From assembly GCF_006345805.1 (NCBI RefSeq), contig NC_042997.1, positions 136,772,001-136,836,000 on the forward strand: 64,000 bases of DNA. Reading direction: 5' to 3'. Each line of letters starts with the position of its first letter. The first letter of the stretch is position 1. Source of the DNA: Octopus sinensis. Its lineage: Eukaryota. Below are positions 16,401-56,249 of the stretch, piece by piece. Position numbers and translations under genes: made by a program. Under the pieces are notes generated by a model that was given only the letters and a program-made list of their open reading frames with translations, made no database searches and had not been told where the DNA came from.

Positions 16401-18957
16401 TTACCAGATTCTTACATCAAAATGCAAATTAATCAACAACAAGAGGGAAAGTTAAATATACATTCAATAAATTTAAGTAGATATGGTTAAAATAAACACC
16501 ATGTAGAAATCGAAATCGAAATCGAATTGAACCAGCCAGGATCCCTGGTTTGGTGGTACGTAAAAAGCACTATCCGACTTGTGGCGTAAAAAGCACTATC
16601 CGACTCGTGGCGTAAAAAGCACTATCCGACTCGTGGCGTAAAAAGCACTATCCGACTCGTGGCTGATGCCAGCTCCGCCTCGTCTGGCTTCCGTGCCGGT
16701 GGCACATAAAATACACCAATCCGACCGTGGCCGTTGCCAGCCTCGCCTGGCACCTGTGCAGGTGACACGTAAAAAGCACCCACTACACTCACGGAGTGGT
16801 TGGCGTTAGGAAGGGCATCCAGCTGTAGAAACACTGCCAGATAAGACTGGAGCCTGGTGCAGCCTTCTGGCTTCCCAGATCCCCGGTCGAACCGTCCAAC
16901 CCATGCTAGCATGGACAACGGACGTTAAACGATGATGATGATGATGATGATGAATCATGCATCTATACTCTAAATTAAATAGACAAATATATATATACAT
17001 GAACCCAGCCTATCAACTAATATATTCTAGAAGAATATGTTATGGACATGTTGAACAGTATGAAAAGTAGGTGCAGGCTTGTAAGCCTAAATAGTTAATC
17101 AATTTGGCCAAATGGATGGAATAAGGGCATAGAGGAATGTGTTATGAACATACTGAAAAGGATGGAAAGTAGTGGCATGCTTGTAAACAGTTAATTGGCA
17201 CTGCCAAAAATGTGGAATAGTAACATGACCTAGTTCTTCTGAACTATGCCTATCCCTTGTCCAGTAAGTTCAAAAAATCAACTTTTAGCTATTTTTAGAA
17301 CAGAATCCAAGACATGCTACAATTCAATCGGAATAAATTTTCCATCCATTAGGATGTGAAAAATATCGGTCAGTCTGAGGAGGGTTTTTGTTTTTTATCA
17401 AATTCATAATGAACTTTAAAGTGTAAATATGAATGATAGCAATCAGTCGAAATGCAGCATAGGCAGTATGAATGAACTTATTAATTTGACTTAACTATGA
17501 AAATAAATTGACTATTCTATGTATATATTCTCTATTTTCTTTAAATTTTTAAACTCTTTTCTCCTATATCAAAAATGATGGAAATCTCCATAGTGACAAC
17601 TGGAATTTCAGAGGTGTAAAGTACTAATATTGAAGGAGAACCAACAATAAACTCTAGTACATATACACATGAAAAATTTCTAGTATCGTTAATCAATATT
17701 AGTGCAAAACTGGTGTATGCTTGGATAATCTTACATATTAAAACTAAAAATAGCTGTGTGTGTGCATCGGTATGTCCTCGTTTTGCACCAAAACGGCTCG
17801 ACCAACTTTTCTTAAACTTGACACGCACATTGCCTATGTTTCTGGGGAGGTTTTAAGTATAAATTAATTTTGGGAAAATGTTTGGGTAAACAGTGTGAGG
17901 AATAACATTTGAGTGTGAGTGAATGGTGGGAGTAAAATTTTTAAGCATCCAAGGGAAATAACCCATTCATTTTCAGTATGCTTATTTCTTAGTATTTGAA
18001 CTATTTTAGTTATTTTCTCAATTTATCCATTACAATGCTTAAATAAGTAAATAGTATTCTCCTAAACAATAGATCACTTATTTTGGTTAGTGACTTATTC
18101 ACAAATATACCAACACTAGCGCTGCTGAGGGTAATATTCTCTGGGAACGCACAAAAGCTTTTTTTCACAGTTAATTACTTTGAATTGTTATTATCTCATA
18201 TCTGATTAGCCTGTTATTACATAACATATTTCACGATATTAGTATACATACCTTAGTATTTCCTCCTAAAATCTGTATACTCTGGGAACGTATTAAAGCA
18301 CTTTTCAGGGCTAATTTGTTTGAATTCTTACTATAGAGTAATTAATTTCATGTTATTACATAACTGACTTCACAATTTGGGTATTCATGACTTATTGGGA
18401 ATTCCTAAAAACAAGATCCTTTGTAAGACAGTTCGGTATTCTCAATAAATACACAAAAACCTTTTTAAGGGCTACATACTTTGTATTGTTGTTACTGGAT
18501 TAGCGAAACAATTGAGAATGGAACCAAGGGATAAACCCGCTTTCCCGGGAATTACTGGGTATGTCAGCTACTATATATATACATATGTGCTTATTATAGC
18601 CTCAGGCTGACCAAAACCTTGTGAGTGGATTTTGTACTCGGAAACTGAAAGAAAACTGTTATATGTGTGTGCATGTCTTGTGTTTGTACTCCCACCATTG
18701 CTTGATAACTGATGTTGCTGTGTTTACATTCCTGTAACTTAGCGGTTTGGTAAAAGACACTGACAGAATGAGTACTAGGTTTACAAAGAATAAATCCTGT
18801 GGTTGATTTCTTCGACCAACAGCAGTGCTCCAGCATGGTCGCAGTCACATGACTGAAACAAGTAAAACAATAAAAATCTATGCCATTTTAATCCCGAGCA
18901 AGGCCAGGTATCTCTGCTAGTATATCCCTAAGAAAGAACAACTTCTTTCTATGCAGA

Positions 18958-18998
<41 letters not shown>

Positions 18999-20709
18999 CA
19001 GGCTTCCACACAGTTTCTATTTAACAAATTTACTCACAAGGCATTGCTCAGCCTGGAGCTATAGTAGGGTACACTTGTACAAGGTACCAGACAGTTGGAC
19101 TGAACCCAAAGCCACGTTGTTGCAATGCGATACAGCTGCGCCTGCACCTATAATCATTTGATTTTTTTTTTTTGGTTCATCATTATATTAATACAAGTAT
19201 CGCTGTATTATTAAGCAATTCCCTTTTCAGCCACATATTTTAGAGTTTCATGTTTCATCCCACAGTATCACATTTTAATCAAGTATTCTCTGCCATAACC
19301 TTGTTAGTGAAATTGGATAAACAATAACTTTGTTAAAATCTGATAGACTGTATGTGTATTTGAATTGTAGGCTTTATTGCCCATCTAACACCGCCACCTA
19401 GCCTTTGGCTGCTCCTAGTGGAGTTCAGACTTACTTTTTTATTTCTTCTTTTTCCTCTTCAGATGATAAACAGATTTGGTCTGTGAAGCAAACTCGAAGA
19501 TTACGTAGCTCCCGAAGTGCTGACTGCTGTTTTTTTGAAAAGAGTGGTAAAGCCATTTATATAGCAGGAGATAGACTATTTCAAATGATTTATGATTCTG
19601 AGCGACCAATAAATACAACTGAAGAAAAAGAACCATTAAAAGATGATTGCCGTAAGTATCTCGTAATAAGTATGAATCATCATCATCATCATCGTTTAGC
19701 GTCCGTTCTCCATGCTAGCATGGATTGGACGGTTCGACCGGGGTCTGGGAAGCCAGAAGGCTGCACCAGGCTCCAGTCTGATCTGGCAGTGTTTCTACCG
19801 CTGGATGCCCTTCCTAACACCAACCACTCCGTGGGTGTAGTGGGTGATTTTTACGTGCCAGGCGAGGCTGGCAACGGCCACAATCGGATTGGTGCTTCTT
19901 ACATGCTACCGGCACGGAAGCCAGTCAAGGCAGTGCTGGCATCGGCCATGTTTGGATGGTGTTTTTCACATGCTGCCAGCACGGAAGCCAGTCAAGGCAG
20001 CGCTGGCATCAGCCACGTTCGGATGGTGCTTTTTACATGCCACCGGCACAGGGATCACAGCTGCAGTTTCCATTGGTTTTTGAGGTTGGTGTACTTGACT
20101 CAATAGATCTCCTCAAGCACAGGGTCGAAACGGTGTTTCTTTACTTGCCACCTGCACAGGAGTCAGTCCAGCAGCCCTGAATGTGGGCATAATTTTACAA
20201 TCATAAAAGATACGTAGTTGATAAATAAGTAACTAGCATTTCATTACCATCCATTAAGTGATTTTGAATGATGTTAAAGGTACCTCTTTACTCCTATGAA
20301 ACTAATGAAAATCTACAAAGAAAATGTTAAACAGAAAGGGAAGCAGGAGGGGAAGAGAGAGAGACACATCTGCATGTTGGATGCTCCTGAACCAGTTGGT
20401 AAGTATCCCACCCATGAAGGATCGATGCTAGATGTGTCAAAATAATTGTAGTGATTAATAAAAATTCTCATATGTTCCATCTTCTGTCTTTCATTTAAAA
20501 TATATATATATTCAAAATGTGACATCGTGTGTACCGTTGGCGATTTTTTTTCCTCTGTCTTCCCTTCTCTGGATCTTTCCTCCTCCTATGTTTCCGACGA
20601 AGAGCTCCACTCGAAACGTTAAACCCTCCTTCTTTCCTGAGCGTCCAATAATACTATATTTGTTCCACGTCCTCGCGTTGTGTTTTTTTGGGCTTTCTTG
20701 CTTGGATTA

Positions 20710-21600: not shown

Positions 21601-24600
21601 CAGGGTGCACAAGATATTTGAGGACAGATTTATCATCATCATCATCGTTTAACGTCCGTTCTCCATGCTAGCATGGGTTGGACGGTTCGACCGGGCATCT
21701 GGGAAGCCAGAAGGCTGCACCAAGCTCCAGTCTTATCTGGCAATGTTTCTACAGCTGGATGCCCTTCCTAACGCCAACCACTCCGTGAGTGTAGTGGGTG
21801 CTTTTTACGTGCCACCTGCACAGGTGCCAGGCGAGGCTGGCAACGGCCACGGTCGGATTGGTGTATTTTATGTGCCACCGGCACGGAAGCCAGTCGAGGC
21901 GGTGCTGGCATCGGCCACAAGTCGGATAGTGCTTTTTACGTACCACCAGACCAGGGATCCTGGTTGGTTCAATTCGATTTCGATTTCGCTTGCCCCAACA
22001 TGTCTTCGCAAGCAAAGGGGGTTGGCATGGGTGCCTGTCGTACGGTCGGATTGGTGTATTTTATGTGCCACCGGCACGGAAGCCAGTGGAGGCGGCGCTG
22101 GCATCGGCCACGAGTCGGATAGTGCTTTTTACGTACCACCTGGGATCCTGGCTGGTTCAATTCGATTTCGATTTCGCTTTCGCTTGCTCCAACATGTCTT
22201 CGCAAGCAAAGGGGGTTGGCATAACTTTATTTATCAAAAAATGTTATGAGAATAAAAATAAAGCTTTTCTATAATGTTATTCAATAAAGCCACCTTCAGC
22301 TTCAACAACTGCTTCTATATGAGACCTAAGTCATCTACATGCTCGAATCAAGTGGTCCTGGTTCATTTTGGACATTACTTTGACTATGGCAGCTTTCAAA
22401 AAATCATTGGTGTTATAGGCATATTCATTGACCTCTCTCTCAACAACGCTCCACATGTAATAGTCCAATGGATTGAGATCTTGGGAATTAGAAGGCCAAA
22501 TGTTAAGAGTTATGTGATCAGGAAAATTTTCATCCATCCTTTCCTGTATTAATAGTGCAGAGTCTTACTGAAACACATGACTTTCCATTGCATACACTGT
22601 CTATCCAGGACTTCAATGTAAGGCAGCAGAGTTAACTCTAAGGCCTTGTGGAAAGAAGTAAGGAGGCATCACACATCCTTCATTGCTGACAACCCCTAAA
22701 ACCATGACAGTAAGGGGAAATTTTATATGCATAACACATGGAACTTCAGATGGGTCTACACATAACCATCTGTCATTTCTTCTGTTAACTTTTTGATCTT
22801 GGTCGAAGTTTTTCTCATTTGAGAAAAACCAAATCAAATCTTCTTCTGCTGGATTTTTCAGTTTATTTAATAGCCTTTTAAATCTAATGTAATAATTTTC
22901 TTTTGCTTTTTTCTGACAAATTGACCTTTCCCCATCATATAAGACTTATATCTGGTGTCTTTGTGGACAACATTTCTGACTGTTCCTTCTGATACATAGA
23001 GATCTTTTGCAATTGAGCTCGTGGACTTTCTGGGATTATAATCAATGGTCTGTTGAACTTGCTGGATAAATTCAGGTGTTCTGATGATTTCAGAGTGTTT
23101 AGAATGCTTTTTATGCTTTGATACTGGTGTTATGTTTCCATCTTCTGTCTCTAGCTCCTTACAAACTTTGTGGATGTAATATCTGACATCTTTTAAAAAT
23201 CGAGGTATTTCTAAATCACTATGCTCAGCTTTTATAACCACAATTACAGCATGCCTCTTCATTTCTTGAGTAAGCTGAGGGTCTGTCATTATCATTTTCT
23301 GAAACAAAGATTATACAGAGTTAGCAAAAAATGCAGCAATAACCCAAAAATGGTATCCTCAAATACCTTATGCACCCTGTGTATATATATATACACATGA
23401 ATATAATACCTTTCAACTTTTACTTACAGCCCCTGAATACACGTGGATGCAGAATGCAGAGTCTGTTACTGTTCATTTTTTGCTGCCAGAAGGAACACCA
23501 AAAGAATCAATTTACATCACTCTTCAATCTGATTACATTGATGTAGGATTTAAAACTGGTAACCAGTTGTTATCAGGACAACTTGACCATCTAATTAACA
23601 CACAAGAATCTACATGGACTTTAAATGATAACAAGTAGGAAGTTATTATTTTACATGTGCTTGTGTGTGGTTAAGATTTCTGCTTCTCAGCACATGGTTT
23701 TTGGGGGGTCGCTCTCACTGCACAGCACTTTGGGCAAGTGTCAACTATAGTCCCAAGCTGACAAAAACCTTTTTAGTGAATTGTTAGATGGTAATTAAAA
23801 GAAGAGTTGTGAGCGAGAGTGTGTGTGTGCGTGCACGCATGTGCATGTGTTTCTTTGTCTTAACATCACACTATAGTTGTAAAGATATATCACCGTCATA
23901 CAAGCAGTGATACTCGCTTCCAATCTTCCATGAAAACATGTCCAGCAATGGGGAAATATTATTACCTTGCTTAGAAACATGTGATGGTTGTTAACAGGAA
24001 GGGTATCTGATAGTAGAAAATGTACTCCACTAAATTCTATCTGAGCCATGCAAGTATAGAAAAGTGGGTGTTAAAATTATATACTATGTGAACTGAGATT
24101 CCCATGGACAATATTAAATAAAGTGCTAAACACATATATTGTGCAAATTAGTAACCCCATATCTCTGAAGCTACTGGATTGGCTGTGTATATAACCAAAT
24201 TGGCTTCTTATTTTTCTGTGATTGATGAAGTGATGTAAACATCTCTGATGAGAACCTAATAAGGTTTGAAAACTGATCAAGGATGTTTTTCAATCTGTAG
24301 AGAAATAGTTACACTTGCTGTGTTTATATATCTACTACATATAAACATTAACCACAGTAAACTCATCCAGCTATATTGCATTCCTAGTCCCAAGCTAACA
24401 AATATAATATTCATGAAGAAAAAAAACTCTTATGGTACTTTATAGCCTTTCTAGAAAATTTACCTTTCTCAACCAGTCCATACAAACAACAGAATATAGA
24501 AATGTTAAAATTCATGTTTCAAAAGATACCATTTGATCATATACATGTGTAACTGTCACACAATTGGTTTGAATCATTCATTATATTGTCTCTTAATTTA

Positions 24601-27600
24601 GATCATATTAAGGCTTTTTATTTAAAAAATGAGGACCCTCGCTGATATGTGCTAAAATAGATTTCAAGTGGATAGAAATAGCGGAAAGTCAGATTAAAAT
24701 AGTGTTCAGCATTTAGTTCCATTTTATATTGTGTTGAAACTTTTTACCAAGATACTATTGTAAGTTCAAATAACTGAGCAAAATAAGCCTTGTGCTTATG
24801 CAAAAAAAAAATTAATAGTCAATGGATAATCTTATTCTCTTTCAACATATTTATAAGTAAAATAAAAGCATATGGTTAGACATATCAGAACATATCCATT
24901 TCCTTTCTGTAAAACCGTTTTTATATACTCATTTTGTTTCTGTATATTTATATATTGTAGACTTGAAGTGTATTTGTCCAAGAGAGATGGAAGTATGTGG
25001 TCTCTTGTTGTCAGAGGTAATATGCGTGGTGAAATGGTTGCATCTGAGGAACAACTGGCTGAGATACACAATAGGTTATCTCATCTAACTTCTGAACAAT
25101 GGGTCAGTACCCTTTTCCTCTATATTTTGTAACTAGAAGATATTAATGTCATATCTATGGTTTACGAGTGCTCACAGTTATAGTCAATTACTTGCTGCAA
25201 AACTGTATTTAAAGGAGTTGATTGAATAAAATACATGCTCTTCTTTATCATTTAATAAATAAAATATATACAATTATATATATATATACACACATATATA
25301 GATATATATATACATATACACAAATCAAATCAAAATCAAAATCAAACAAAATCAAAATAGATGAACATCAATGGAATTTGTATCTTTGTGGTACCAGTGC
25401 CGGTGGCACACAAGAAAACCATCCGAACGTGGCCGTAGCCAGTACCGCACCGACTGGCCTCCATCCTGTGGGCACGTAACAATCACCATCCAATCGTGGC
25501 CGATCACCAGCCTAATCTGGCTCCTGTGTCGGTGGCACATAAATAAAAAAAAAATACCACCCGAGCGTGGTCGTCTGCTAGCCTTGTCTGGCACCTGTGT
25601 CGGTGGCACATAAAAACACCATCCGAGCGTGGCCATTCGCCAGCCTCGTCTGGCACCTGTGTCGGTGGCACATAAAAACACCATCTGAGCGTGGTCGTCT
25701 GCCAGCCTTGTCTGGCACCTGTGTCGGTGGCACATAAAAACACCAGCCGAGCGTGGCCGTTCGCCAGCTTCGTCTGGCACTTGTGTCGGTGGCACATAAA
25801 ATCACCCACTACACTCTCGGAGTGGTTGGCGTTAGGAAGGGCATCCAGCTGTAGAAACACTGCCAGATCTGACTGGCCTGGTGCAGCCTTCGGGCTCCCC
25901 AGACCCCAGTTGAACCGTCCAACCCATGCTAGCATGGAAAGCGGACGTTAAATGATGATGATGATGACACACACGCATATAAATATCTATATAAATACAT
26001 ATATATATATGTATGTATGTATATATACACGCATATATATATACACACTCACGAACGATGTCACAAATAACAGTAACAAACGAAATATACACCGCCTGAA
26101 GTAGTTAACAAACAACAGCAGTAATTTTATTCAGCTAAATACATATCACTGAGTGGTTGAAATTACCAAAATACAACTTAAACACAAAACTTTGAACATA
26201 TAAACTTTTCTCAACAACACTAAGAATAAAATGTGTTTTATATGACACATTCTTCCAATGTCCGAAGTTTGAAAGTGTTTTATTACAAAAAATTAATTTC
26301 TCAATCTGCCGTTCAAAGGGTAAAGCTCCTCAGTTTTTGTAAATTAAAACTGATCAGTAGTTCCTCTGCAATACAAATACAAGATTTTTAACAAATATTT
26401 TTCAAAAATATTCAGACTTCTACATGTTATTTTGATTTGCATTTATCAATTTCCAAGGTTATCTTCAGTAAAATTCATCATGTTTTTCTTTCAAAATTTC
26501 AATTTGCTTTATGAAATAGATCTGCTGGTTGCATAATCAATTAAGATACCAGCCTTCTGATTGAGAGATCCACAATTCATAACTTGTCTTTAACACTAAC
26601 CATGAACAACTCAGCATTGAGGGATATAGCGTTAATAACTCGGGATCTGTGGCTGATTAAGCATAACAACACAGAAACTTGTACTACAGTTTGATGACTT
26701 CAATCAATGTCCAGTTTAGTGTTTTCACACACATTGCCCATAAGGAGAATTTCTCTTCCAAAGCATTTTCCAGTCAAGGTCTTTCTACTTTTGAGTGTGT
26801 TAAATATAAATGTACATAACTTTATTTTTCAAATGTTAAATGAAATACTACACTTAAGAGTAAGAATACTTCGATTAATGGACGTTAAAAACAGTTCTAG
26901 TACTAATAAGTGTCGATTAGCATGTGTCATCAGCTGCTAAGAACAAAGGTTAAATCTCATTACTGATTCAACTAATGCAAGAAGAGATTTTATTTTCACA
27001 GCTCATAAATCTAAAAATGAAACAGAAATTGTCATATTGTTCTGCTAAAGCTACTGGTTATATGGAAATCCAATCCATGTGTTCCAACGTTGGTCGTTAA
27101 AGGGTATTAGCAATTCTTAGACTTAGAAAATGCATCTCTCTGAGAAACAATCATATATAATGGTTGTTTTTTTTTAATATTATTTTCATTTCTATTATTT
27201 TAACTCTGTAGAACCCCAATCCAGACAAGCAAAATAAACCCTTCAACAGCCAACAGTTAGAAGATTGTGATGCCTATCCCGATACACAGGCCATGTTAGT
27301 GCGTATTGATGGTGTCAAACATGAAATTACACACCAGGTAACTTCATTTTCTTTCCATCTTATCATTTTCACCTCCATTTTCCATAGCAGCATGGGTAGG
27401 CCATGTCTGCTTCATTATGTCACATCGTTTTGCTGTTTTGTCATCTGTGTGAGATTATGCAATCTTCACCATACCCACAAGCTCCTTCCAAATGGCACAT
27501 TTGACTCTTCTTAGCCATATTGTTATATAGTTGTTCTTTATATGCATCGCATGTCCAATGTAGTGTAGATTTCAAGCTACAACTAGTTTCTTTTTTCTCT

Positions 27601-28585
27601 CAGAACACTCATGGTGTCATTCATGCATGACGATTTATTCATCCAGTCGAGCATAGCTATCTCGTTTCTTCCCAGCATTCATACACTCTGCAATTAGTGT
27701 ATATATCTCACTTCTATACAAAACTTCACTTTGCATACAACCATCATATAATCTACTCCACTCTTAAAGAACTTTGTTGCTTACTGCAATAATAAATAGC
27801 TCCCTGAGCTTTCGCCTCTTCCATTACATTCTGATTATTGTTTCAACTGCTACTTAAGGTTACCCAAGTAACAAGTTGTTAGCTAATTGTAGTACGGTTA
27901 AAAGATTGCATTCATGCATATTATTTATGTCAGCTTTTCCTGAGATCCATTCCATATTACCTGCAAGCCTTTTATTTGTGTCATGAAACAGTAAAATCCA
28001 AGGAAAGTGATAGCATCATACTGTATTATATTAACAGATGAAATATTTATGATTCTCTCCAACTTTTGGGGGAGACTATTCGACTGTCTGAAATCAAATT
28101 TATTATTCACTCCTACATTTCAGGCCCATCTTGGAAGTCATCAATGGCTTTTCAACACCTTCACTGATGTTGAGAAAGCTCCTGCTGTCTGTCTACGCCA
28201 TGATGTTGATGGATTAGTGTGGCAGTTAGGTGATGATGACAGCTTTGACTTGGCTACACAACCATGGCGACATGTAGCAACATTCAACGCATTTGGTTAT
28301 GTTCAAGCTTCAAAACAACAAAAGAAATTTTCAACTTGTCCACCTGACTTCTCTTATGTAATCATCAGCGATTGTTCGAAACATTGTTACATATATCGTC
28401 AACCATTAGCCATTACTTCATCAATTAGAAACCGTAAGACTGGACATCAAGTAACAGCTGTTGCTAAGCAGCAAGTACTCTCTTTGGAAGCAGCAGAAAA
28501 TATTATGGGTGTCCAGGCAACTAATCATTATCTTTTTATTTTAACACCAACCAAACTTCTAGCTGTCAATATGGAATTACATTAA
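10486..28585 (+). CDS. NUDCD1: NudC domain-containing protein 1 (604 aa, 9 coding exons)
   Basis: Exons 10486-10606, 13123-13289, 14039-14245, 14654-14849, 19463-19651, 23430-23634, 24961-25102, 27212-27337 and 28124-28585 are all GT-AG and phase-compatible, totalling 1815 nt. Motifs LLNPNFDGYKLSLEPLP, YTWMQ (CS domain), CLRHDVDGLVW, HVATFNAFGYVQASK and VAKQQVLSLE match NUDCD1. Confidence 0.95.
12050..13000 (+). mobile_element. Degenerate RTE-like LINE ORF2 fragments
   Basis: Remnants EEVKIAIKQI and LPYQVLSSAL..YKDQLKHAM, with many stops. Confidence 0.5.
15130..16460 (+). mobile_element. Degenerate Penelope-like element (RT thumb and GIY-YIG region)
   Basis: DNIIPFTKQIRTNIVKLFCKVVSKHFSEKNKYHKIINSQKFRVSF resembles the PLE post-RT motif. 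Downstream STSLSKLIWSIK and RCELCVEE resemble the PLE endonuclease. Confidence 0.65.
16500..16952 (+). mobile_element. SINE with (GAT)n tail and internal 4x26-bp repeat
   Basis: Conserved 3' part ggcgttaggaagggcatccagctgtagaaac..catgctagcatgga..gatgatgatg. Unit gtaaaaagcactatccgacYYgtggc repeats at 16560-16663. Confidence 0.8.
17550..18920 (+). mobile_element. Helitron-like element with nested SINE (about 18590-18870)
   Basis: Ends cccgagcaaggccagg...CTAG|T and has a (TG)n near its 5' part. The 5' boundary is uncertain. Confidence 0.4.
19675..20180 (-). mobile_element. SINE of the (GAT)n-tail family
   Basis: Reverse complement of the same family as 16500-16952. Confidence 0.8.
20590..20624 (+). 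ncRNA. Minimal type I hammerhead-like motif in a Penelope-like pLTR fragment
   Basis: gttt-CCGACGA-A-GAG(ctcca)CTC-GAA-ACGT-T-aaac: stem I, core with a U4C change, stem II and palindromic stem III. Confidence 0.5.
21601..23379 (-). mobile_element. Defective Tc1/mariner (maT/DD37D-like) transposon with nested SINE (about 21633-22220)
   Basis: TIRs CAGGGTGCACAAGATATTTGAGGA at 21601 and its inverse ending at 23379, with TA on the left flank. Transposase fragments include an HTH, FFSNEK (catalytic D to N), FQ*DSA and WPSNSQDLNPLDYYMW. Confidence 0.88.
24237..24288 (+). ncRNA. Degenerate hammerhead-like motif
   Basis: aaacatct-CTGATGA-gaacc(taataa)ggttt-GAAA-actgaTC-aaggatgttt. Stem III is defective. 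Confidence 0.4.
25390..25975 (+). mobile_element. SINE of the (GAT)n-tail family with expanded ~60-bp internal repeats
   Basis: About five units of ggtggcacataaaaacaccatccgagcgtgg...tggcacctgtgtc followed by the canonical 3' tail. Confidence 0.8.
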
Positions 28586-29196: not shown

Positions 29197-32100
29197 TTAT
29201 TTTTCTTTGACTTGGAGACCTAAAAAAAATAAATTAAATAGTACATTAGTAATCAGCCACATTAAAATTTGTTACAAAGATGTTACAAATTTCATAGTAT
29301 GCAAAATTAAATCAAAATGGTTTTGATATACAACAAATGCAAATCTGGATAAAGATTTTTACAATAAACACTCCAGAATAATCACATAAGTCCCTAACAC
29401 TTGTATCATAGTCCTAATAGAATATTATAGATGTCCAGTTGAGATTTAAGGACAATGCAATATTATAATAATCATGAATATGGATGGATTTCCATAAATT
29501 ATGTAACTCTAGCATTTTTACTACAGAAGTACAAGTCCATGTAAAAAACATTGAATGAACTTAGTACATAGGAAAGCAAAGAATACTAAATAGTAATGAT
29601 TATTCAATGTATTTTCCTCTTTTAATGAACTCTTGCTCCCTAAGACTAGTAACAGGGACATGGTTGCTATTAAACTACAGAAGAAGAAGAAACATGCACA
29701 AAGGGTTAATTCCAGAGTGGGTGATTACTATGGCAAAGAGGTGGATATGTTTAGTGCAGTTTGGAGAGAGAGGAGGAGATACAAATGGATTTGAAAAGTG
29801 ACATGAGCTTAGCTTGGTCCAAAACCGGTCATTGTAAGTAGAAAACACAAAAACAAGGAAAGAGCACACAACAGACCAGAAATAGGGAGTCTAAGACGTC
29901 TATTTTTAATAGAAGCACAGTCCCAGATGTTGAGACAATAGGCTTTATAACTATTATCTGTTCCTGAAGAAGGTCAATCTTTGTGATTATAGTCTTTATT
30001 GAGGCAATTGGGTATTTAAGGTTAGAGTAAAATGAAAGCTAACTCATCAGCACTGACACTTTAGGCAAATATGTTGCTATGTAAGGAGGAAAATGAGTAA
30101 GACAAACTGCTTATGTTGCAGGTTAATGGGCAACCTATTAAAGAGATAGGTAGAACCCAGGGGTAAACAGTTTAGCTTGAAGATTTACATGACAAACAAA
30201 AAAGAATATTTTGCTAATGTCCTATTTTAACAGTTTTCAAATTTCTCACGAGCAAGTGGTACTACTGAATGACAATGAACAGTTCAAGCCGGCCTATTCC
30301 CAAAGGCAATCCAGTCACATCTTCCCTTTCTAGGACCAGATTATCCAGTATCCTGTATTTGTTGGGACAACAGGGTATGAGGGAAATCTGGCAGTTGTTT
30401 CTTGTAAATCAAGCAACTACATACAAGTTGTCATTTTTGTTAGGAAATAAGTTAATTTTTTGGCTCAAAAAGCAAAAAGCAAGGCCATGTGTACAGAGTT
30501 CAGGCCATTTCTGGTCAAGTGAGACTTTGAACCGAGCAGTCGTCGGCATCTTCACTCTCGTCCGGCAGCTTATTCCACAGATCTGTGGCCCGGATGGAGA
30601 AAGCCCGACCCCAATCTACTATGTTTACATCATCTCTAGAGATTGTATTCTTCCAACTAAACCACTCAACATTGAAACATAAGCACAGACTAAATCTGAG
30701 ACAAACAGAGAGTTACTAATTGTCAATGAACAAAAACTTAACTAGTATATAATATAAAATTAGGCATGATAAAAGCTCTTCTACTGAAGCAAGAAATTAA
30801 GCATATTTAATTTAAAAGAACAAACAAAATCCAAGTCAGGCAAAGCTTTCCGTGCACTGTGTCATAAGACACTCAAACAAGAGGTGTCAAAGCTTAATCA
30901 TCACACAAGGACAAATAGTTGCAGAGTCTCAAAGAATCATATCTTTTGGTTGGACACCTATCCAAGGCATTTATGAAAGTGGGGACTCTGCTAAGTGATT
31001 TTGGTTTAACTAGCTAACACATTAGGATTACAACTTAACTCTTACTGCAGTTCTAACAGAACAATGTGTGCCAGTGGAAACAGAGCTAAACAGATAATTA
31101 TGATAACTATTGCAAAACATTAACAGTTATAAATACGAAGTCATACTAGGGTATAAATAAATATCACAAACATTACTACACACTAAGCATTCTGAAGAAG
31201 GTTAAGATGAACTATACAGCTTCATGATAGTAATAATTCCAAATGCTATGTATCAAGATCTTTTAATCTAAATCAATAAAATTGCATTAATGTTGTAAAT
31301 TAACTCTCAGTACAGAGATTACCTTAAAAAGATGACCCAGCTAATTTTAATTCTAAGTAGTGAACATTTGATATTTCTGAGAAAAAAACACCACTCACAA
31401 ACATAGGTGGCAGGCTCATAAAAGATACAAGTGCTTGTGTAATTTTACATTTTTGTAAGCCTGCATATAACAGTTCATTGTACTAATTGAGTCCATCAAC
31501 GCAAACTTACTCTTAACTCAAAAGAGAATAAACAAATATCCAAGTCAGTCAAAGCTTCCCGTGCATTGTGTCATAAGACACTCAAACAAGAGGTGTCAAA
31601 GCTTAATCATCACACAAGGACAAATAGTTGCAGAGTCTCAAAGAATCATATCTTTTGGTTGGACACCTATCCAAGGCATTTATGAAAGTGGGGACTCTGC
31701 TAAGTGATTTTGGTTTAACTAGCTAACACATTAGGATTACAACTTAACTCTTACTGCAGTTCTAACAGAAAAATGTATGGCCAGTGGAAACAGAGCTAAA
31801 CAGATAATTAAGATAACTATTGCAAAACATTAACAGTTATAAATACGAAGTCATACTAGGGTGTAAATAAATAACACAAACATTACTACACACTAAGCAT
31901 TCTGAAGAAGGTTAAGATGAACTATACAGCTTCATGATAGTAATAATTCCAAATGCTATGTATCAAGATCTTTTAATCTAAATCAATAAAATTGCATTAA
32001 TGTTGTAAATTAACTCTCAGTACAGAGATTACCTTAAAAAGATGACCCAGCTAATTTTAATTCTAAGTAGTGAACATTTGATATTTCTGAGAAAAAAACA

Positions 32101-35100
32101 CCACTCACAAACATAGGTGGCAGGCTCATAAAAGATACAAGTGCTTGTGTAATTTTACATTTTTGTAAGCCTGCATATAACAGTTCATTGTACTAATTGA
32201 GTCCATCAACGCAAACTTACTCTTAACTCAAAAGAGAATAAACAAATATCCAAGTCAGTCAAAGCTTCCCGTGCATTGTGTCATAAGACACTCAAACAAG
32301 AGGTGTCAAAGCTTAATCATCACACAAGGACAAATAGTTGCAGAGTCTCAAAGAATCATATCTTTTGGTTGGACACCTATCCAAGGCATTTATGAAAGTG
32401 GGGACTCTGCTAAGTGATTTTGGTTTAACTAGCTAACACATTAGGATTACAACTTAACTCTTACTGCAGTTCTAACAGAAAAATGTATGGCCAGTGGAAA
32501 CAGAGCTAAACAGATAATTAAGATAACTATTGCAAAACATTAACAGTTATAAATACGAAGTCATACTAGGGTGTAAATAAATAACACAAACATTACTACA
32601 CACTAAGCATTCTGAAGAAGGTTAAGATGAACTATACAGCTTCATGATAGTAATAATTCCAAATGCTATGTATCAAGATCTTTTAATCTAAATCAATAAA
32701 ATTGTATTAATGTTGTAAATTAACTCTCAGTACAGAGATTACCTTAAAAAGATGACCCAGCTAATTTTAATTCTAAGTAGTGAACATTTGATATTTCTGA
32801 GAAAAAAACACCACTCACAAACATAGATGGCAGGCTCATAAAAGATACAAGTGCTTGTGTAATTTTACATTTTTGTAAGCCTACATATAACAGTTCATTG
32901 TACTAATTGAGTCCATCAACGCAAACTTACTCTTAACTCAAAAGAGAATAAACAAATATCCAAGTCAGTCAAAGCTTCCCGTGCATTGTGTCATAAGACA
33001 CTCAAACAAGAGGTGTCAAAGCTTGATCATCATACAAGGACAATTTATACAAAGTTTTGAAATTTCAAGAATACCAACCCAGCCATACAAAAGTGTTCAC
33101 ATTCAAAATCTCATAACAAATGATTTCAACTCCAACAATGCCCACCAGGCTATACCAGTACATAAAACAAGACAGTTCTCAAAATACTGATTATATAGAA
33201 AATTAGTTGAGAGAAATGAAATCAAAGCTAACTGCACAGTATTGTCAAGAGACTAAAAGCAAACTGTCTAAATCTTGATTACACAAGAATTGTTCAAGTC
33301 CCTCAAATTCTAATGTAATGTTGCATTTTAATAAACCTGTATATATTTAACAATCTATCAGCAGAACTCAATTCAGCTTAAACCTTCCTATAATCACAAT
33401 TACTCAAGCATCCATATTTAATTCAAAATCAAACATGAATGACATCTTAAAATTTACACTGTCAACAGCATAACACACCTATATGTAAAGGTGGATATTT
33501 TACAAAAACCCTCCAAAATACTGATTATATAAAAAAATTTATTTAAAGCATAAGCAGTCTACTCATGAAAAATAGCCAGAAAAGGATTACAGATAAATCC
33601 AAGTCAGTCAAAGCTTTCCGTGCATTGTGCCAGAAGACACTCAAACAAGAGGTGTCAAAGCTTGATCATCACACAAGGACAATATTTACAGAAATTTATG
33701 TATAACCCTGCATATATATCAGACAACATATATTTCAAGAAGTTGACATGGCTGTAGTTGTTGACCAATATCATGTGACAATTTAATACAGTAAGTAATA
33801 GTGACAACAGAGGGTAGAGAAGGTTAGCTGAGAAATGGACGAAATATTCAAGTCAGGACATGCAATAGAATAATTAAGATGAAATCATTATCATCATCGT
33901 TTAAGGTCCGCTTTCCATGCTAGCATGGGTTGGACGATTTTGACTGAGGGCTGGCGAACCAGATGGCTGCATCAGGCTCAAATCTTGATTTGGCAGAGTT
34001 TCTACAGCTGGATGCCCTTCCTAATGCCAACCACTCCGAGAGTGTAGTGGGTGCTTTTTATGTGCCACCAGCACGGGGGCCAGTCAGACAGTACTGGCAA
34101 CAACCTCGCTCGAATCCTTTTACACATGCCCCCAGCACAAGTTAAATGAAACTCAACATTTATCTCCGCATACACCACACCAAGAAGACGTACTCCAACT
34201 ACTCTATAATGAGTAGCTGTGTAGCTTCCCTACAGCAAGAAATCTGCTCTGGTCCCTTCTCTCTCACTTTCACCCCTCATTCTATAGCATAAAACCCTAC
34301 TCAGTCAAACAAGATCTTAGTGTTGCAGGCATCATGGTAGCATCCCTTAATACTGGTTCCACAAGCAAGTGCAGGCTGTAAAACAGTTGGCATTAGGAAG
34401 GATATCCAACCATAGAAACCATGCTAAAGCAATGGAGCACAATCTCGTCTTTGAACATGTCATATAACACAACCAATGATAGCTTGGAACATGGACATTA
34501 AATGGTATGTGTGTGTATGTATGCATACAAAAGAATTGTCTATATATAATTACACATTCATCACTACCAGTTAGGGTAAAGCAGTTAAACTGACATGATG
34601 CCATTAGCAGTTAATAATAAACCCATATCAGTCAAAAGTTATGATCACAGTCACCGTTAGAGGCTGACTAACATAATACATGCAACATCATGTACAGGTT
34701 TATAATAGGTGTAAAGTTGCAGCTATTTCATTTGTTAACATCTTGAAAATCCCAACATATAATGATTAAAATCCTTAGAACACCAATGTTCCAAGTTATT
34801 TTTTCCATAAACAGCAACAGTATTACTCCTTTAGCAGTTAAACTGACCAAATCTGGCCCAAATATTCTTCCAGACCAAGCAAGTCTGGCATCTCACACCT
34901 AACCTACAATATCATTATAAAAATAAAGAACCACTTCATAGAAATTTTCCAACTATAAGACAATGCAGGAGTCAAAACAATAAGACAAAATAACCATTAC
35001 ATTTAACAGAGTAATCTAAATGCTACAGGGTTAAAGATGGCATTAATATGATGCTGTTAGGAAAGACATCCAACCTTGGAAACCTGATACTCACAAAATT

Positions 35101-38100
35101 AAAGCTGACTACAGGTAAACTATCAAGCAAAAGAAAATTGATTACAATATGAATAGCAATATTACAAACCTGGTGGTAAAGATTGCTTTAATTTGTCAGC
35201 CTTTTCTCTGTCATGTATAACCAGTGTATACAAGAAGCGGCTACAACGAACTTTGAATTTAACATTATCCCGATTCTTCTTAATTTTTACGGCTGGAAAA
35301 GGAAAATGATTCAGGTAAATCTCAATGTACAATTTCTAATCACTGATGTAAATACATGCGTAAAGAAAATGCAGTATAAATTGTTGCAAAGCATTCATAT
35401 GAATACATAATTTGCCACTCAACTTTTAATTGCGGCTGTAAGCAGTTAACTCGAATCTTTTCCTTTTGATGGACGGAATTTTCTAGTTAACTAAACAATT
35501 TGAAACTTTGTATACTGGTAGAATGTGTCAAAAGAAAACATTATTGTAAACAAAATTGTAATTTGTAAGTTTAACGTAGTTTAATTCGAAGAATTTTAAC
35601 CAATGAAATGTCAGCATTTGAGCTCAAATCATTTGCTGCGTCTAAAAACACACACACACGTCTTATTCATCCTTATCTCTTCTGTCTTCTATATGTGCTA
35701 GAAATAACAGCTATATCTCTTAAATCAATGAATTTCGTCGCCCAATATTAACGATATTTTTTGAATATTTTCTTTTATTTTTTTTTACCGAAAAGGCTTC
35801 TCCCATGGTTTTGAAGGGCCAGAAACAACAAAAACAAAACAATAATATGCCTAAAGCAGTCTAGAGTTTGCGCGTGGAGTGTGAGTCGTATTGTAAAAAT
35901 TTGCGAAATATTTTTTCATAAAAGGATGCCCCAGCTTGTCGGAGGCTGTGATATAAATTGGGAAAAAAAATCCTCGACACCAGTGCGTAATTGGTACTTA
36001 ATTTATCGACCCCGAAACAATGAAACATTGACCCCCGCCCATTCTGGCTTATTTACCTTTTGTGTAAATTTGTTGCAGCAAGGGGCAAAACACAGAGGGG
36101 ACAAAAGTATTAAGTCGATTCTATCGACACCCGTGCGAACACACGAACGTGTATGTATGTTTGTGTGCGTATGTGTGTATGTATATCTCCATTTGTATGT
36201 GTGTGTACGCTTATATATTAATTACTGTGCTTGTGCAAATGTATATGCATGTGTTTGAGAGAGAGAGAGAGAGAGTGTGTGGCAGTGTGTATGTATCTGA
36301 ATGTGTGTGTGTGTGTGTGTATGCGGCATGCGTCTATGTTTCTTTATCAATATCGATAACGCAGCAAATGATTTGAGCTCAAATGCTGAGATTTCATTGG
36401 TTAAAATTCGAAGAATTAAACTACGTTAAACTTACAAATTACAATTTTGTTTACAATAATGTTTTCTTTTGACACATTTTATCAGTATACGAACTTTCAA
36501 ATTTTTTAGTTAACTAGAAAATTCCGTCCATCAAAAGGGAAAAGATCGTTAACTCTAAACCTGTGTCAGTTCAAAATTGTACACAAAGAAAATTAACATA
36601 AAAAGTTTTACACTAACAACTATTTTACATTGTGTACTAGGTATATTTTATCTTGGGATTTAATACAGAGTGTCCTGTCCTCATCATCATTTAATGTCCA
36701 ACCTTTCAACCCTACACTATCCATTCATTGGCCAATGACTTTATGGCATGTACCGAGTGTATTTTATCATGGCACAAGCACTAAAGACTGAGCAAAAGAG
36801 ATCAAGAGTACTCTGTCACTCACTAAGTTAAAAGATTCGGCAATCGTTTTGTCTCAGAAATGCTATTCACGATTTGTCATCCAGTCGTTACTTTCCATGA
36901 AAAGTTTTTATTTATTTACTTCTGACATGTCCAAGTGGAAGAGGAAGCAAATGGGTGTACGTGTGCATTGTTTTAAGTATTTGTATTCACTATAAATTTT
37001 GCATACACAAATGAAGTAGGTAAGAACGAATCCTAGCCACACACACACAAAAACGCATATAACTTGCACATTACAAAATACGATACAGTTTTTGTTATGC
37101 GTGTGTGAGTAGGCAGCATTAATGAAGATGTTACATGTTAATTTAATGTTAAACTTATCTTTCTTAATGCATATCGAATTATACATAAATATATACAAGA
37201 TTTACACAGATACGAGTCAGAACTTGTGATCTGCCTGCCTCTTCGACATGTTGACAATACGTGCTTTCAAATCCTGCTTTCTGATTAGATAAAAATTTTT
37301 CATGGAAAGTAACAAAGATAATGGCATTTCTGAGACTCAAAAAATTGATTTCCAAGGAAACTCACTTCTTTACATTGCATTATACTTTATGCACAAGTCT
37401 CAAATACACTGTCCTTTACTCAGAGAGATACCCTTCATTACCAATAAAAGTGATAATTCTTTGAGCTTTCCACACTGGTGACTATAACGTAAATATCCAA
37501 TAGATAAAATATAAATTAGCCTTAAAAAAATGACTATTTGTATGAAGCTAATGAACGGAAACATTAACAGTTAACCCGCATCAGTCAAAAGTTATGATCA
37601 CAGTCATTCTTAAAGAGTGACTAACATAATACATGCAACATCATGTACAGGTTTGTAACTGTAAAGAAAACCTCAAAACTCACACAAATTTCTCACTTTG
37701 GTTTATCATACTTTCAGAAAACCCACCTCACTGCTAACAAGGCTAAGAAACAAATACAGCTTTATAAAGGTCAGCTAGGGAAAGGTCTCTGCAAAGTTAA
37801 CTTGATGGCATGACAAAAGACCATCAAGATGAACCAAAGTCCTTTCAACATTACTGGAAATACTATTGAATATATCTATAAAAGCAATACAGAGTTACAA
37901 ACAAATAGTGATAGAAAAACAGTGAAGCTGTCGACTAATAAAATTTTGGGGGATAATGCAGTTTCATACCTCTCCTTGAGAAACTGATATTAAACTATGT
38001 ATACCAGTATTTACTACATATGATGCCTATATAAAACAATGTAATATACTCACATTTTGCATCTTTCCTTCTCGCAGTCAACAAAAATTCCTTTATTTCT

Positions 38101-41100
38101 GATATTTGTCGTGGCTGTAACATAAAATCAAATAGAAGTTGATGAAAATTTCACTAAAATGACATTTTAAAATTATAAGGATTTTCATATCACTTCAGAA
38201 AACAAATTTACCTTCCCCAGCATATTATACAGTAAAAGGAATCAATTTGGATCCTTTCAAATATTTACAAGTGTCCATTCAGTTGTGCATGCATATCTGA
38301 TTTTTATTAATTACTTCCAAAAACTTCTTTTTCTCTTGAGGCAGCCAATTTAACAATAAGCTTTTTAAACAATTTTGAAAACAAATGACAATAATGCAAC
38401 TAATAATTTCCAAATGACATTTTTCATATACTAATATGGAGGACTTTTGGCCTATGTATTATCCTCTTATATTCTGGAACATTAGAAAATTAAGCACAAG
38501 GAAAACGATAATCTGTAACTATAAAAGGGTTTGTGTGTGTGTGTGTGCGAGTGTATGTTCCTTATGCATTCCAAAACAGAGCTGCTGATTTTGATGTAAT
38601 GGGTATTCAAAAGATTCAGTAAGCTTTTGGCTACGAACTAAACTATTTTCATTCACATATTTGCATTACAAAAATTTAACATTATCATTTTTCTTTTAGT
38701 CACGACATTTTACATCACCACCATAATGACAATTTCTATACAAGTGTTTGCACGTTTGTTACCGACGTTAGGCCAATGACTAACAAGTATGTGTGTGTGA
38801 TGGTGTGTTTGTCAGTATACATTTTCCTGACACACAGAGGAACGGAGATAGGCTTCAGGTGTGCGTGTACGCGTGTGTGCCTCCAACAGTGAAATGCACC
38901 GATATTGAAAGTTTACTTGCAGCCTGGACTTCAAAGAATGTTCACTTTCAAGTACTACCAACATGAAGATATGGCTGATTTAACACCACTCACAATACTC
39001 GCAAATATATTCTGGTTAGTATAACAAATTCGGAAACTTGGCAAAGTAGAAAGCCTCAGCAGCTCTTTCAATATAATTACAGAAATTTTATTCCACTCCT
39101 AACCAGTTTCAAGATATGACTTCTATTCCTACCAACTGATGTTAAGACTATTATAGCACAGGGCTTGAAATTTCGAGAGAGGGGACCAGTCGATTTACCA
39201 ACCCCGAAAGGATGAAAGACAAAATTGATCGTGGCAGCATTTGAACTCAGAACATAAAGACAGGCGAAATACTGCTTAAGCATTTTGCACTGACATGCAA
39301 ACGATTCTGCCAGCTCACCAGCTTCCAGAACAATTAAATCAATTACACATGTCAAACTTTATTCTCATTTACATATTTTCTACATTATCCCAATAACCAA
39401 CTATAGTTATTTCAAATACACTTCTCTACAACGACCAGGTGTCATTACAAAATAAAAATAGTTTCAATTTTAATTTGAACCAAAATTCCAATGTGTTGCA
39501 TTACAAGAGTGACGATGTGTGAATAATGAAAGTAATGTTTCTCCGAAATAGTCACATGTATATTGAATGGAACTGGATGGTCACACCCCCACCCAAAATG
39601 ATCTTTCCGATTTTTTTTCCCCACACCAGATTCCTATGTTTTCAATGACAGAGATTCCAAAGAAAAAAAAACGCCTTCAAAATTTTTTTAGATCTACATG
39701 GAAAAATACGTATTCTCTTGCTTTTTTCAATATTCAATGAAAAGGGGGAATATGTTGTTACCATCAACATTAAAACTTGAGTAACTTGATCGATCTGTCA
39801 TTGAATCAGGATTTTATTTTAATTTCATTTGATACAAACTTTTGCTATCATTTATATGGAGAATTGCAATCGTGGCATATAAAGATAACTTATTTTAATA
39901 GAAAGTTTATGAGTAGATTTCTATAAATGTTTTTCTTGCACATCCACCATTCCTACCCATACGGAAACAGACTAAACATCGTTTAAAATTTGTCCTCCCC
40001 ATATTTTTCCACATAGATTGAAAAAAAAAATTGGGGTGGGGGGTAATTAATTTTGAAGGCAGTTTTTCTCCGTCATCGAAAACATAGGAATCTGGTGAAA
40101 ACAATAGGTGGGGGACTCCTCCAGTACCACCAAAATAACCTCGACAACTAGGTTGAGTCGCACAATTTTGAGATCATTTTCAGGCAATATTTTGATTTGC
40201 TTCTAGTGTACCACTTTTGTCCGATGTTTCACGTGTAAAATTCTACTCAGGCAAACAATTATGAAAATGTACACATAAATATGTACTAAAATAAGCCACA
40301 ACCAAAATAATTGCATTAAAAGACATCCATTTTTCTATAGGTTATGAGGAAATACATCCTCACTCACTCTCTCACACACAAAAAAGATGTATGCATATGT
40401 ATTTATGGGCAAAGATCAAGAATACGCACTCTCGGTGTTTAGGGTTACGCCAAAAACGGGTCGTGTGCGTATTCTTTACCTCCGCCTATTTACGTTTAGG
40501 GTTGAGGTTAGGGCAACATAAAAAAGTGAAAAATGAAATTGAAGGGGAGACAAAAAAATTTAAAGAAACAATAATTTGCGGGAAATGGGGGGAGGGATAT
40601 GGGAGGAAGTCTTTTCATCAAATGCTAATGCTGCCAAGGGCCCTTCGAAAAAATTTCAAGTTTTTGATGGGTTTTTTTTTCTCTCCAATGCAAAAACATT
40701 GTTGAGCAGAAAAATTACCAAAACCATCTCATTTAAGCAAGATCTTAATTTTTATTTGTAAATGGTTTCGATTATTTCAATTGGTTACACATGGACAGAA
40801 CAACATTGTTTCTCTACTATCAAGTTCGTAAACAGAAGTACTACAATATTCGAAAAAGTCTTGAAAAACTACCTCGATTAACTATTTCCTCAAATTCCGG
40901 ATGCAAGAAAAAAGTTTGCCAAAGATACTCGTTAAATGTAAACAGAAGAGATAGTGAAGAAAGCGCCACGTGACATTATGACGACTAAACAAGTTAACAG
41001 CATGAGGCTATCATGAAAGCACTAATTTAATCGAGTCACATATGAATTTTCGTCTCAGTGCAAATAATTGTTATGAATTAACTAAATCAGACTATAATAA

Positions 41101-41708
41101 AAATCATTCCTATAACGATCCAAAAAGTAGATGGATTAAGGGTTCGCATTTCCGATTTGTCCTTAGAACACGTGGGTTTTTTTTTTGTTAAGCCAGATGT
41201 ACAAATTCTGAGATCGCTTTAGAGAAACAAATCGCTAATATTCCAGACTTAATGAAAAGACTGGGGGGGGGGATATTTGTTATAAATGTTGTAGACTTGG
41301 TTTTAAGTTCTGCCAATGTCGGAATTCTGATAGCTCTACGAAATTTACTCTGGCTAAAATAATACGGAAGAAGGCGACAATATTCAACTCGGCTGGTTTT
41401 CTTTCCCCCACCGATGGCTAAACTATATATTCAATACTCTTGAATATATACACAGCAAAATACAACATTCAATTTGAAACCTTTTAAAATAAAATATCAC
41501 TATTTCTAGTCTTTCAAAATTTTTTTTTACTGATATTAGCACGAAATATTAACTAATATTGAGTTCTATTATTCTATGCTGCATTTGAACTTACAATTCT
41601 TTCAGTTCACCTGTATCCTAATCACATGCATGCAGTATTTAATACATATCTATAAAAATTAGTCTATAAATCTGAACAGAAAATTGAACAAGTCATAATA
41701 CTCACCAT
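29197..41708 (-). CDS. RPL38: 60S ribosomal protein L38 (eL38), 69 aa
   Basis: Minus-strand coding exons 41706-41708 (ATG only, end of the 18-nt exon 41706-41723), 38054-38114, 35170-35292 and 29197-29219 are all GT-AG. They give [75 protein letters not shown] lies at 29184-29189 (-). The ORF track misses this gene. Confidence 0.96.
30495..30637 (-). ncRNA. Long (143-nt) C/D-box snoRNA/scaRNA-like RNA in RPL38 intron 3
   Basis: Minus strand: agag-ATGATGT (C box variant) ... CTGA-actct, with an AGAG/CTCT terminal stem. The GC-rich interior folds into a long hairpin (gtcgg/ccgac, ttctc/gagag, tccgg/ccgga, ccacag/ctgtgg). It is sense to the host and stands out from AT-rich flanks. Confidence 0.65.
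30830..30912 (-). ncRNA. C/D snoRNA, LSU rRNA guide (snR48-like site), copy 1
   Basis: Minus strand has C box GTGATGA, guide TGACACCTCTTGT followed by D' TTGA, and D box CTGA. The guide is complementary to conserved LSU GCAAGAGGUGUCA. Confidence 0.8.
31539..31621 (-). ncRNA. C/D snoRNA, LSU rRNA guide, copy 2 (chimeric)
   Basis: Same boxes and guide as copy 1; lies inside the tandem array. Confidence 0.8.
32249..32331 (-). ncRNA. C/D snoRNA, LSU rRNA guide, copy 3 (chimeric)
   Basis: Same sequence as copy 2. Confidence 0.8.
32959..33041 (-). ncRNA. C/D snoRNA, LSU rRNA guide, copy 4
   Basis: C box ATGATGA, same guide, D box CTGA; marks the right boundary of the array. Confidence 0.8.
33598..33680 (-). 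ncRNA. C/D snoRNA, LSU rRNA guide, copy 5 (dispersed)
   Basis: Boxes and guide are conserved while the flanks are unrelated to the array unit, as expected for a selected snoRNA paralog. Confidence 0.82.
33890..34140 (-). mobile_element. SINE fragment of the (GAT)n-tail family
   Basis: catcatcgtttaaggtccgctttccatgctagcatggg..ctggatgcccttcctaatgccaacc. Confidence 0.75.
34620..34700 (-). ncRNA. U45/SNORD45-like C/D snoRNA (18S guide), copy A
   Basis: Minus strand: aacctgtac ATGATGT TGCATGTATTA T GTTA .. GTGATCA (C') .. CTGA tatgggtt, with an 8-bp terminal stem. The guide is complementary to 18S UAAUACAUGC, and the layout resembles vertebrate U45 (from memory). Confidence 0.78.
35453..36547. 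mobile_element. GGATC-family MITE (long TIRs, 8-bp TSD)
   Basis: Inverted repeats of about 190 bp and TSD gttaactc at 35445-35452 and 36548-36555. The internal segment is shared with 52286-52971 and 61740-62620. Confidence 0.85.
37573..37653 (-). ncRNA. U45/SNORD45-like C/D snoRNA, copy B (RPL38 intron 2)
   Basis: Boxes and guide are identical to copy A. Only the central hairpin differs, and it stays paired. Confidence 0.78.
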
Positions 41709-41851
41709 TTTGAATGTTTAGAGCTGAAAATAAAATAAAACGTCAATTAATTTCAACAATATATTGAAATTACATTTTTAAATATTCATGTGCATATTTT
41801 TTCAAGTTTCAACAACTTAAAAGGTCTCGTCGGAAAAATCGAGAAAAATTT

Positions 41852-55011: not shown

Positions 55012-56249
<1,238 letters not shown>

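Follow-up and report, generated by a model that had tools for sequence, protein, structure and literature searches.

In known tandem clusters such as SNORD115 and SNORD116, small nucleolar RNA (snoRNA) genes with orphan guides are present in tens of copies; their host is non-coding and imprinted, and each unit contains an exon. Unequal crossover between paralogous repeats is known from the alpha-globin genes, with their 3.7-kb deletion and reciprocal triplication, and from the red/green opsin arrays. The present analysis concerns a stretch of 64,000 nucleotides from Octopus sinensis (assembly GCF_006345805.1, contig NC_042997.1, positions 136,772,001 to 136,836,000 of the forward strand; referred to as the window, with positions counted from its first letter), in which an array of box C/D snoRNA genes lies within the last intron of the ribosomal protein gene RPL38. 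We consider it likely that this array arose by homology-driven unequal exchange inside the snoRNA, followed by a second exchange inside the spacer, and that its members are methylation guides hosted by RPL38. Like SNORD115 and SNORD116, the array is made of head-to-tail units with one C/D snoRNA each, expanded by unequal exchange; unlike them, it has three units, a protein-coding ribosomal protein gene as host and a canonical ribosomal RNA (rRNA) guide, and the presence of exons in its units is hypothetical. As for alpha-globin and the opsins, misaligned paralogs would have given hybrid junction genes together with a duplication, and a reciprocal deletion allele is predicted, but the homology in the window extends over about 85–130 bp, with a perfect tract of 38 bp. 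Intragenic (cis) tandem duplication is recognised as the main source of snoRNA paralogs, with the guide and the boxes under purifying selection (PMC2653536), and the movement of snoRNAs from one intron or host gene to another has been documented (PMC3511168). The locus shares with such cis-duplicated paralogs the tandem duplication within one host gene; vertebrate paralogs, however, usually occur one per intron, whereas the five copies here reside together in a single annotated intron, with breakpoints that can be located to intervals of 38 bp and 120 bp. The locus is a neat, datable case of cis-duplication in which both steps remain readable with their breakpoints preserved, and is not a new kind of system or one that overturns current understanding.

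The head-to-tail array occupies positions 30829–33041 on the minus strand and comprises four snoRNA copies of 84 nt and three spacers of 625–626 bp that are mutually 98.5–100% identical, with unit periods of 709, 710 and 710 in a repeat search; the fourth unit is partial and consists of the snoRNA-like element alone. Tandem Repeats Finder (TRF) did not detect the array, because the array period of about 710 exceeds the TRF limit of 500. From left to right on the plus strand, the components, of which the spacers were delimited by repeat search and unit alignment, are the older paralog c1 (30829–30912), which is the most downstream copy in the transcript, with box C GUGAUGA, D' guide UGACACCUCUUGU and box D CUGA; spacer S1 of type Sa (30913–31537); the hybrid c2 (31538–31621), whose 3' part (plus-strand left) is c4-type and whose 5' part (plus-strand right) is c1-type; the mosaic spacer S2 (31622–32247); the hybrid c3 (32248–32331), identical to c2; spacer S3 of type Sb (32332–32957); and the older paralog c4 (32958–33041), also represented in the Rfam alignment, with box C AUGAUGA. 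An earlier note on this DNA had described a four-copy locus whose array starts and ends exactly at snoRNA copies. Copies c1 to c4 are present as claimed, but a further older paralog outside the array, c5 (33597–33680, minus strand), and the probable relic of a sixth copy (33843–33870, minus strand) had been overlooked; c5 lies 639 bp beyond c4, differs from it at four positions, carries the same D' guide and was used as an outgroup. The description of the array ends holds, in that the limits of high identity fall within a snoRNA copy or at its edge, and a weaker similarity of about 60% continues for some 20–25 nt past both ends of the array and is also found beside c5. The spacer between c4 and c5 and the outer flanks have no significant homology to the 625-bp spacer, so that the older copies share only about 130 bp, namely the snoRNA and its immediate flanks.

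The first duplication step can be read from the variants that distinguish the copies. On the plus strand, c1 carries G, T and C at 30840, 30849 and 30857, where c2, c3 and c4 carry T, C and T at the equivalent positions; c4 carries G and T at 33025 and 33033, where c1, c2 and c3 carry A and C. The two middle copies are identical to each other and differ from c1 at three positions and from c4 at two, and c1 and c4 differ at 5 of 84. All the marker sequences quoted in the earlier note are present, and c2 and c3 are chimeras as it had proposed, joining the left part of c4 to the right part of c1 by a single switch, a mosaic that persisted after realignment. The change from c4-type to c1-type falls between 31566 and 31605 in c2 (that is, within 31567–31604) and between 32276 and 32315 in c3 (within 32277–32314), which corresponds to the longest tract (38 bp) over which c1 and c4 are identical, one that spans the conserved D' guide, the D' box and the C' box. 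Comparison with c5 gives a direction to two of the markers: at the equivalent of 30849, c5 shares T with c1, so that the C common to c4, c3 and c2 is derived, and at the equivalent of 33025 it shares G with c4, so that the A common to c1, c2 and c3 is derived. The left 28 bp of c1 contain three differences from the other copies, as compared with nine in the 620 bp between spacers (binomial P = 0.008). This significant excess divergence, the states in c5 and the similarity of about 60% in the flanks show that c1 and c4 were distinct paralogs before the array formed. This agrees with the earlier suggestion that snoRNA paralogs served as the recombination substrate, since the direct repeats c1 and c4 predate the duplication and the hybrids switch within the tract of identity. 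The related suggestion, that the array was amplified by unequal crossover inside the snoRNA, applies to the first step, with its 38-bp tract, but not to the step from two to three spacers, which crossed inside the spacer.

This second step is recorded in the spacers of the three full units, U1, U2 and U3. The spacers of U1 and U3 differ at nine positions including one indel (about 1.45%); in columns 233–336 all six variants group U2 with U3, and in columns 457–635 all three group it with U1. U2 is thus composed of the left part of U3 and the right part of U1, joined between 31875 and 31994 (S2 is of S3 type up to 31874 and of S1 type from 31995), and it has zero private variants in 710 bp. By chance, so clean a partition has a probability of 0.024 if only the spacer sites are counted and of 0.009 if all 12 sites are.

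The order of events would be as follows. The ancestral intron would have contained separate paralogs c5, c4 and c1, with c4 and c1 about 710 bp apart from start to start. Subsequently, c4 of one DNA copy would have paired with c1 of the other, and an exchange resolved in the 38-bp tract would have produced the arrangement c1-S-hybrid-S-c4, either by unequal sister-chromatid or meiotic crossover or by replication slippage between direct repeats of 85–130 bp that are 710 bp apart. Crossover and replication slippage or template switching between the direct repeats c1 and c4 are indistinguishable from their product; slippage is at least as plausible as meiotic crossover because the homology covers only about 85–130 bp, of which 38 bp are perfect. 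The two spacers would then have diverged by nine differences. Finally, and very recently, the 710-bp repeats would have undergone another unequal exchange, located in the spacer, which would have led to the present order c1-Sa-hybrid-(Sb-left/Sa-right)-hybrid-Sb-c4. The copies would be co-transcribed with RPL38 and freed from the spliced intron. Such a history predicts alleles with one, two and three spacers and illustrates that conserved small-RNA genes can seed their own amplification. The hybrids c2 and c3 would have no new specificity, since the D' guide is identical in all five copies, and any effect would be one of dosage; a dosage benefit and copy-number polymorphism of the array are conjectural.

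The view that the elements are genuine box C/D snoRNA genes was borne out by their boxes C and D, their sense orientation in an RPL38 intron and a guide that is conserved across phyla. All five copies have box C (GUGAUGA, or AUGAUGA in c4) and box D (CUGA). Between these boxes come, in order, 21 nt that end in UGACACCUCUUGU, the D' box UUGA and the C' box UUAUGA (UUCUGG in c5), both of them degenerate, and a further 20 nt. The terminal stem GUCCUUG/CUUGGAU has five pairs and two U-U mismatches and is lengthened by flanking A/U pairs in the predicted folds of c2 and c4; the folding energy of the copies is no better than that of shuffled sequence, as is usual for the box C/D class. Rfam at gathering thresholds gave no match to the window or to the mollusc loci, and the best weak match of the family is snoR1. 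In the Rfam alignment the D' guide UGACACCUCUUGU is identical to the snoR1 consensus guide at 13 of 13 bases, followed by AUGA in snoR1 and by UUGA in the window. Arabidopsis SnoR1 targets 25S G2792 and is described as orthologous to snR48 of yeast, the guide for Gm2791 and Gm2793 (PMC8053127), and snR48 is listed in Rfam clan CL00066 (PMC3511168). Both snoR1 (RF00345) and snR48 (RF00471) belong to this clan. Human SNORD60 is presumably a member of it as well. The octopus copies resemble snoR1/snR48 in their box C/D architecture, the identical 13-nt D' guide and its register relative to a degenerate D' box, and hence in the predicted LSU (large subunit) rRNA G; elsewhere in the RNA, the D-box guide included, the sequences are unrelated. 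The genomic setting also differs, plant snoR1 being found in gene clusters and yeast snR48 being an independent gene, whereas the host here is an RPL38 intron in lophotrochozoans. The array snoRNAs belong to a putative, previously unannotated lophotrochozoan branch of the snoR1/snR48 guide family. As a separate observation on these RNAs, the palindrome AAGCUU occurs twice in each of the five copies, right after box C and right before box D; the two sites pair in the predicted minimum-energy folds of c2 and c4, a pairing that would close off both guide regions.

By its complementarity, the D' guide should direct 2'-O-methylation of the LSU rRNA G that corresponds to G2791 in yeast 25S and to Arabidopsis G2792. 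The G that ends AAG in AAGAGG (context AAG followed by AGGUGUCAG) pairs with the fifth guide nucleotide upstream of the D' box; this is the register of snoR1 G2792 and snR48 G2791. The Watson-Crick complement of the guide, CAAGAGGTGTCA (12 nt), was found in 29 of 120 eukaryotic ribosomal DNA (rDNA) contigs, and in 42 the pairing reaches 14 bp if one wobble is counted, these contigs coming from other organisms and having been picked by a pattern that contains the target core; those reading GCA followed by AGAGGTGTCAGA would give a duplex of 14–15 bp with the guide. At least 120 metagenome contigs contain AGAGGTGTCAGAAAAGTTACCACAGGGATAACTGGC, in which the target core is extended by its conserved continuation; two of these contigs were checked, and both proved to be eukaryotic LSU rRNA. 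The independent support for the target consists of the identity to the snoR1 guide and of cross-species conservation, as the contigs were chosen by the core itself. We infer that all copies are expressed and that the methylation itself takes place. Another candidate target, the LSU helix-63 region (GAGAGGUGUAGAAUAAG), was dropped, the Rfam snoR1 alignment and the literature (PMC8053127) indicating the AGAGGUGUCAGAAAAG site. Outside the window, the D-box guide CACGGGAAGCUUUGA shows no conservation, and its best rRNA match, CCGAAGUUUCCC, includes two G-U pairs and is no better than those of shuffled guides.

The family is also found at RPL38 in other animals. The nine-base guide core ACACCTCTT has five occurrences across the 64 kb, all of them on the minus strand and within the copies (shuffled mean 0.6), and it is the only invariant block in an alignment of 11 copies from four species, in which the boxes are kept and the remainder varies; an invariant guide core with kept boxes is the signature expected of a working methylation guide. 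The D' box is UUGA in the window copies, CUGA in Haliotis and AUUA in Patella and Dimorphilus. RPL38 of Haliotis rubra has two copies, located in 5' introns, in which CUGA follows the guide UUGACACCUCUUAU; one of them is 85 nt upstream of an exon. RPL38 of Patella caerulea has three copies in a 14-kb intron between two central coding exons. In Dimorphilus gyrociliatus, two copies (locus positions 3600–4100) lie immediately 3' of the RPL38 stop codon, each in a short intron-like segment and 65–70 nt from an acceptor, a layout that suggests a spliced 3' untranslated region or a separate non-coding host adjoining RPL38. The RPL38 loci of Saccoglossus, Tachypleus and Branchiostoma contain no copies of the family, and a scan of metagenomes with a 28-mer of the snoRNA gave no match. 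The association of the snoRNA with RPL38 looks lophotrochozoan, with the occupied intron differing among lineages, and the keeping of the linkage while the intron changes fits with snoRNAs that are mobile within host genes.

Several points weigh against the proposed history or against the identity of the copies as guides. Within the snoRNA body the hybrid is supported by one shared derived base per side, the other three markers being private to c1 or c4 and possibly younger than the duplication, and a perfect tract of 38 bp is short for classical homologous recombination, which makes replication slippage a serious option for the first step. All five copies are far below threshold in Rfam, the snoR1 match reaching 18 bits as compared with a gathering score of 49, and the agreement between the guide and rDNA contigs selected by the target core is partly circular. 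The five snoRNAs share one annotated intron and none of them lies at the usual distance of about 70–90 nt from the annotated 3' splice site, c1 being 1.6 kb away, so that the release of each is unexplained. The structure and timing of the array also rest on one assembly of one individual (look-ups of two open reading frames (ORFs) of the window returned no other contigs), and a mis-assembled extra unit would look just like U2, which lacks private variants. An assembly artefact, in which the true haplotype has one or two spacers and a composite unit was added or alleles were placed in tandem, would account for U2 being exactly the left of U3 and the right of U1. We regard this as quite improbable, since U1 and U3 differ at nine spacer positions, including the indel, and are anchored to different unique flanks and snoRNA variants, so that at least two of the spacers must be distinct sequences. 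In addition, assemblers tend to collapse rather than expand near-identical 710-bp repeats.

The mosaic patterns could also have been produced by gene conversion in an older array of three units, making U2 a mosaic and possibly the snoRNAs hybrid without a crossover. Conversion tracts are to be expected between 710-bp repeats that are 99% identical and would show the same left/right partition of variants, but this scenario needs more events, an old U2 should bear private mutations where none are seen in 710 bp, and conversion cannot create duplicated spacers, for which unequal exchange is needed anyway; we therefore view it as unlikely. A non-homologous tandem duplication of a unit made of snoRNA and spacer, with a partial fourth unit, would make c4 a recent copy whose markers arose later. 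In its favor, three of the five markers occur in c1 or c4 alone, and the two differences in the right part of c4 do not clearly exceed what the spacer rate would give (for 46 bp, P = 0.14; for 17 bp, P = 0.025). On the other hand, the left part of c1 is too diverged for a recent copy (three differences in 28 bp, P = 0.008), c4 shares the G at 33025 with the outgroup c5, the similarity of about 60% extends outside both array ends to the matching spacer ends and the flanks of c5, and the array edges would have to match the snoRNA edges by chance alone, all of which leaves this explanation very improbable indeed. Unequal exchange inside the snoRNA and then inside the spacer is consequently the history that we favor.

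The snoRNA features are readable on the minus strand only, which is the strand of RPL38; all five copies lie in sense orientation in its last intron, and RPL38 exons on the same strand flank the region. The coding part of the last exon of RPL38 (eL38) is at 29197–29219 and, together with the G at 35170, completes GGT (Gly) and then encodes LQVKEK and the stop codon, with acceptor ttttttttag followed by GT and with AATAAA signals after the exon. The last intron (29220–35169, 5.95 kb) holds all the copies of the family described above (family A), one SINE-like (short interspersed nuclear element-like) repeat and one candidate snoRNA of a second family (family B). Upstream, the exon at 35170–35292 encodes SVKIKK...SLPPG, 40 residues between a split (S) and a split (G) (tblastn E = 4e-22), the exon at 38054–38114 encodes 20 residues with a protein-level match, and a short exon ending in the ATG start codon (41706–41723, ctctaaacattcaaaATG followed by gtgagt) was placed from splice signals; all are on the minus strand. 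The spliced RPL38 protein has no exact counterpart in the protein collection, and its closest named match is 93% identical.

In animals an intron commonly hosts a single snoRNA, and vertebrate paralogs are mostly in different introns (PMC3089462). Crude splice-site scoring and inspection of the minus strand of the octopus intron revealed mini-exon-like segments between the copies, with acceptor-like and donor-like bounds. A 54-nt segment occurs once per spacer (31323–31376, 32033–32086 and 32743–32796), bounded by tttttttctcag and gtaatc; a 42-nt segment (33479–33520) starts 76 nt downstream of c5 and is bounded by tatataatcag and gtgtgt; and a 41-nt segment (33146–33186) is preceded by the same acceptor-like motif of 18 nt, tatataatcagtattttg, which is identical at the acceptors of the 42-nt and 41-nt segments and recurs here 334 nt downstream of its first occurrence. 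It is a doubtful proposition, drawn from the letters of the intron, that each snoRNA sits in its own alternative mini-intron, in which case the 710-bp unit would be a module of snoRNA plus mini-exon and its expansion would add poison exons to RPL38. If this were true, snoRNA release would be coupled to non-productive, decay-targeted RPL38 isoforms, with the copy number of both being polymorphic. The layout resembles that of Dimorphilus, where the snoRNAs lie 65–70 nt upstream of acceptors in short introns after the RPL38 stop codon.

The probable relic of a sixth copy reads CCTGACTTGAATATTT and agrees at 14 of 15 bases with the family sequence of box D, the 3' end and the flank; it abuts the SINE-like repeat. 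This repeat (33875–34108) recurs at least four times elsewhere in the window (approximately 16747–16945, 19667–19860, 21632–21830 and 25774–25967). A weak Rfam match to snoZ247 at 33837–33901 owes its box C to the (GAT)n tail of the SINE-like repeat and was judged spurious as a snoRNA, although its 3' part resembles a relic of the family.

Family B, the second C/D-like family, is present at 34620–34700 in the last RPL38 intron and at 37573–37653 in the preceding intron, both on the minus strand, as a conserved block of about 81 nt with diverged flanks, box C AUGAUGU, box D CUGA and terminal stem AACCUG/UGGGUU. Its 5' guide UUGCAUGUAUUA is complementary to a conserved SSU (small subunit) rRNA sequence, UAAUACAUGC(AA), and its best Rfam match is SNORD72, with 21 bits as compared with a gathering score of 43. 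In the intron that separates the two central coding exons of RPL38, an inverted repeat of 184 nt (35458–35641 and 36359–36542), with arms 717 nt apart and 95% complementary, looks like a foldback or MITE-type (miniature inverted-repeat transposable element) insertion. Beyond the 3' end of RPL38, the last exon of a NUDCD1 homologue (28007–28585, plus strand) converges on it from about 600 bp away, and it has a 96% identical match, on short public contigs only. Elsewhere in the window, two ORFs of tandem C2H2 zinc fingers on the plus strand (55428–56249 and 56355–56807), the first with nine fingers (Pfam E = 3.6e-50), suggest a zinc-finger gene cluster.

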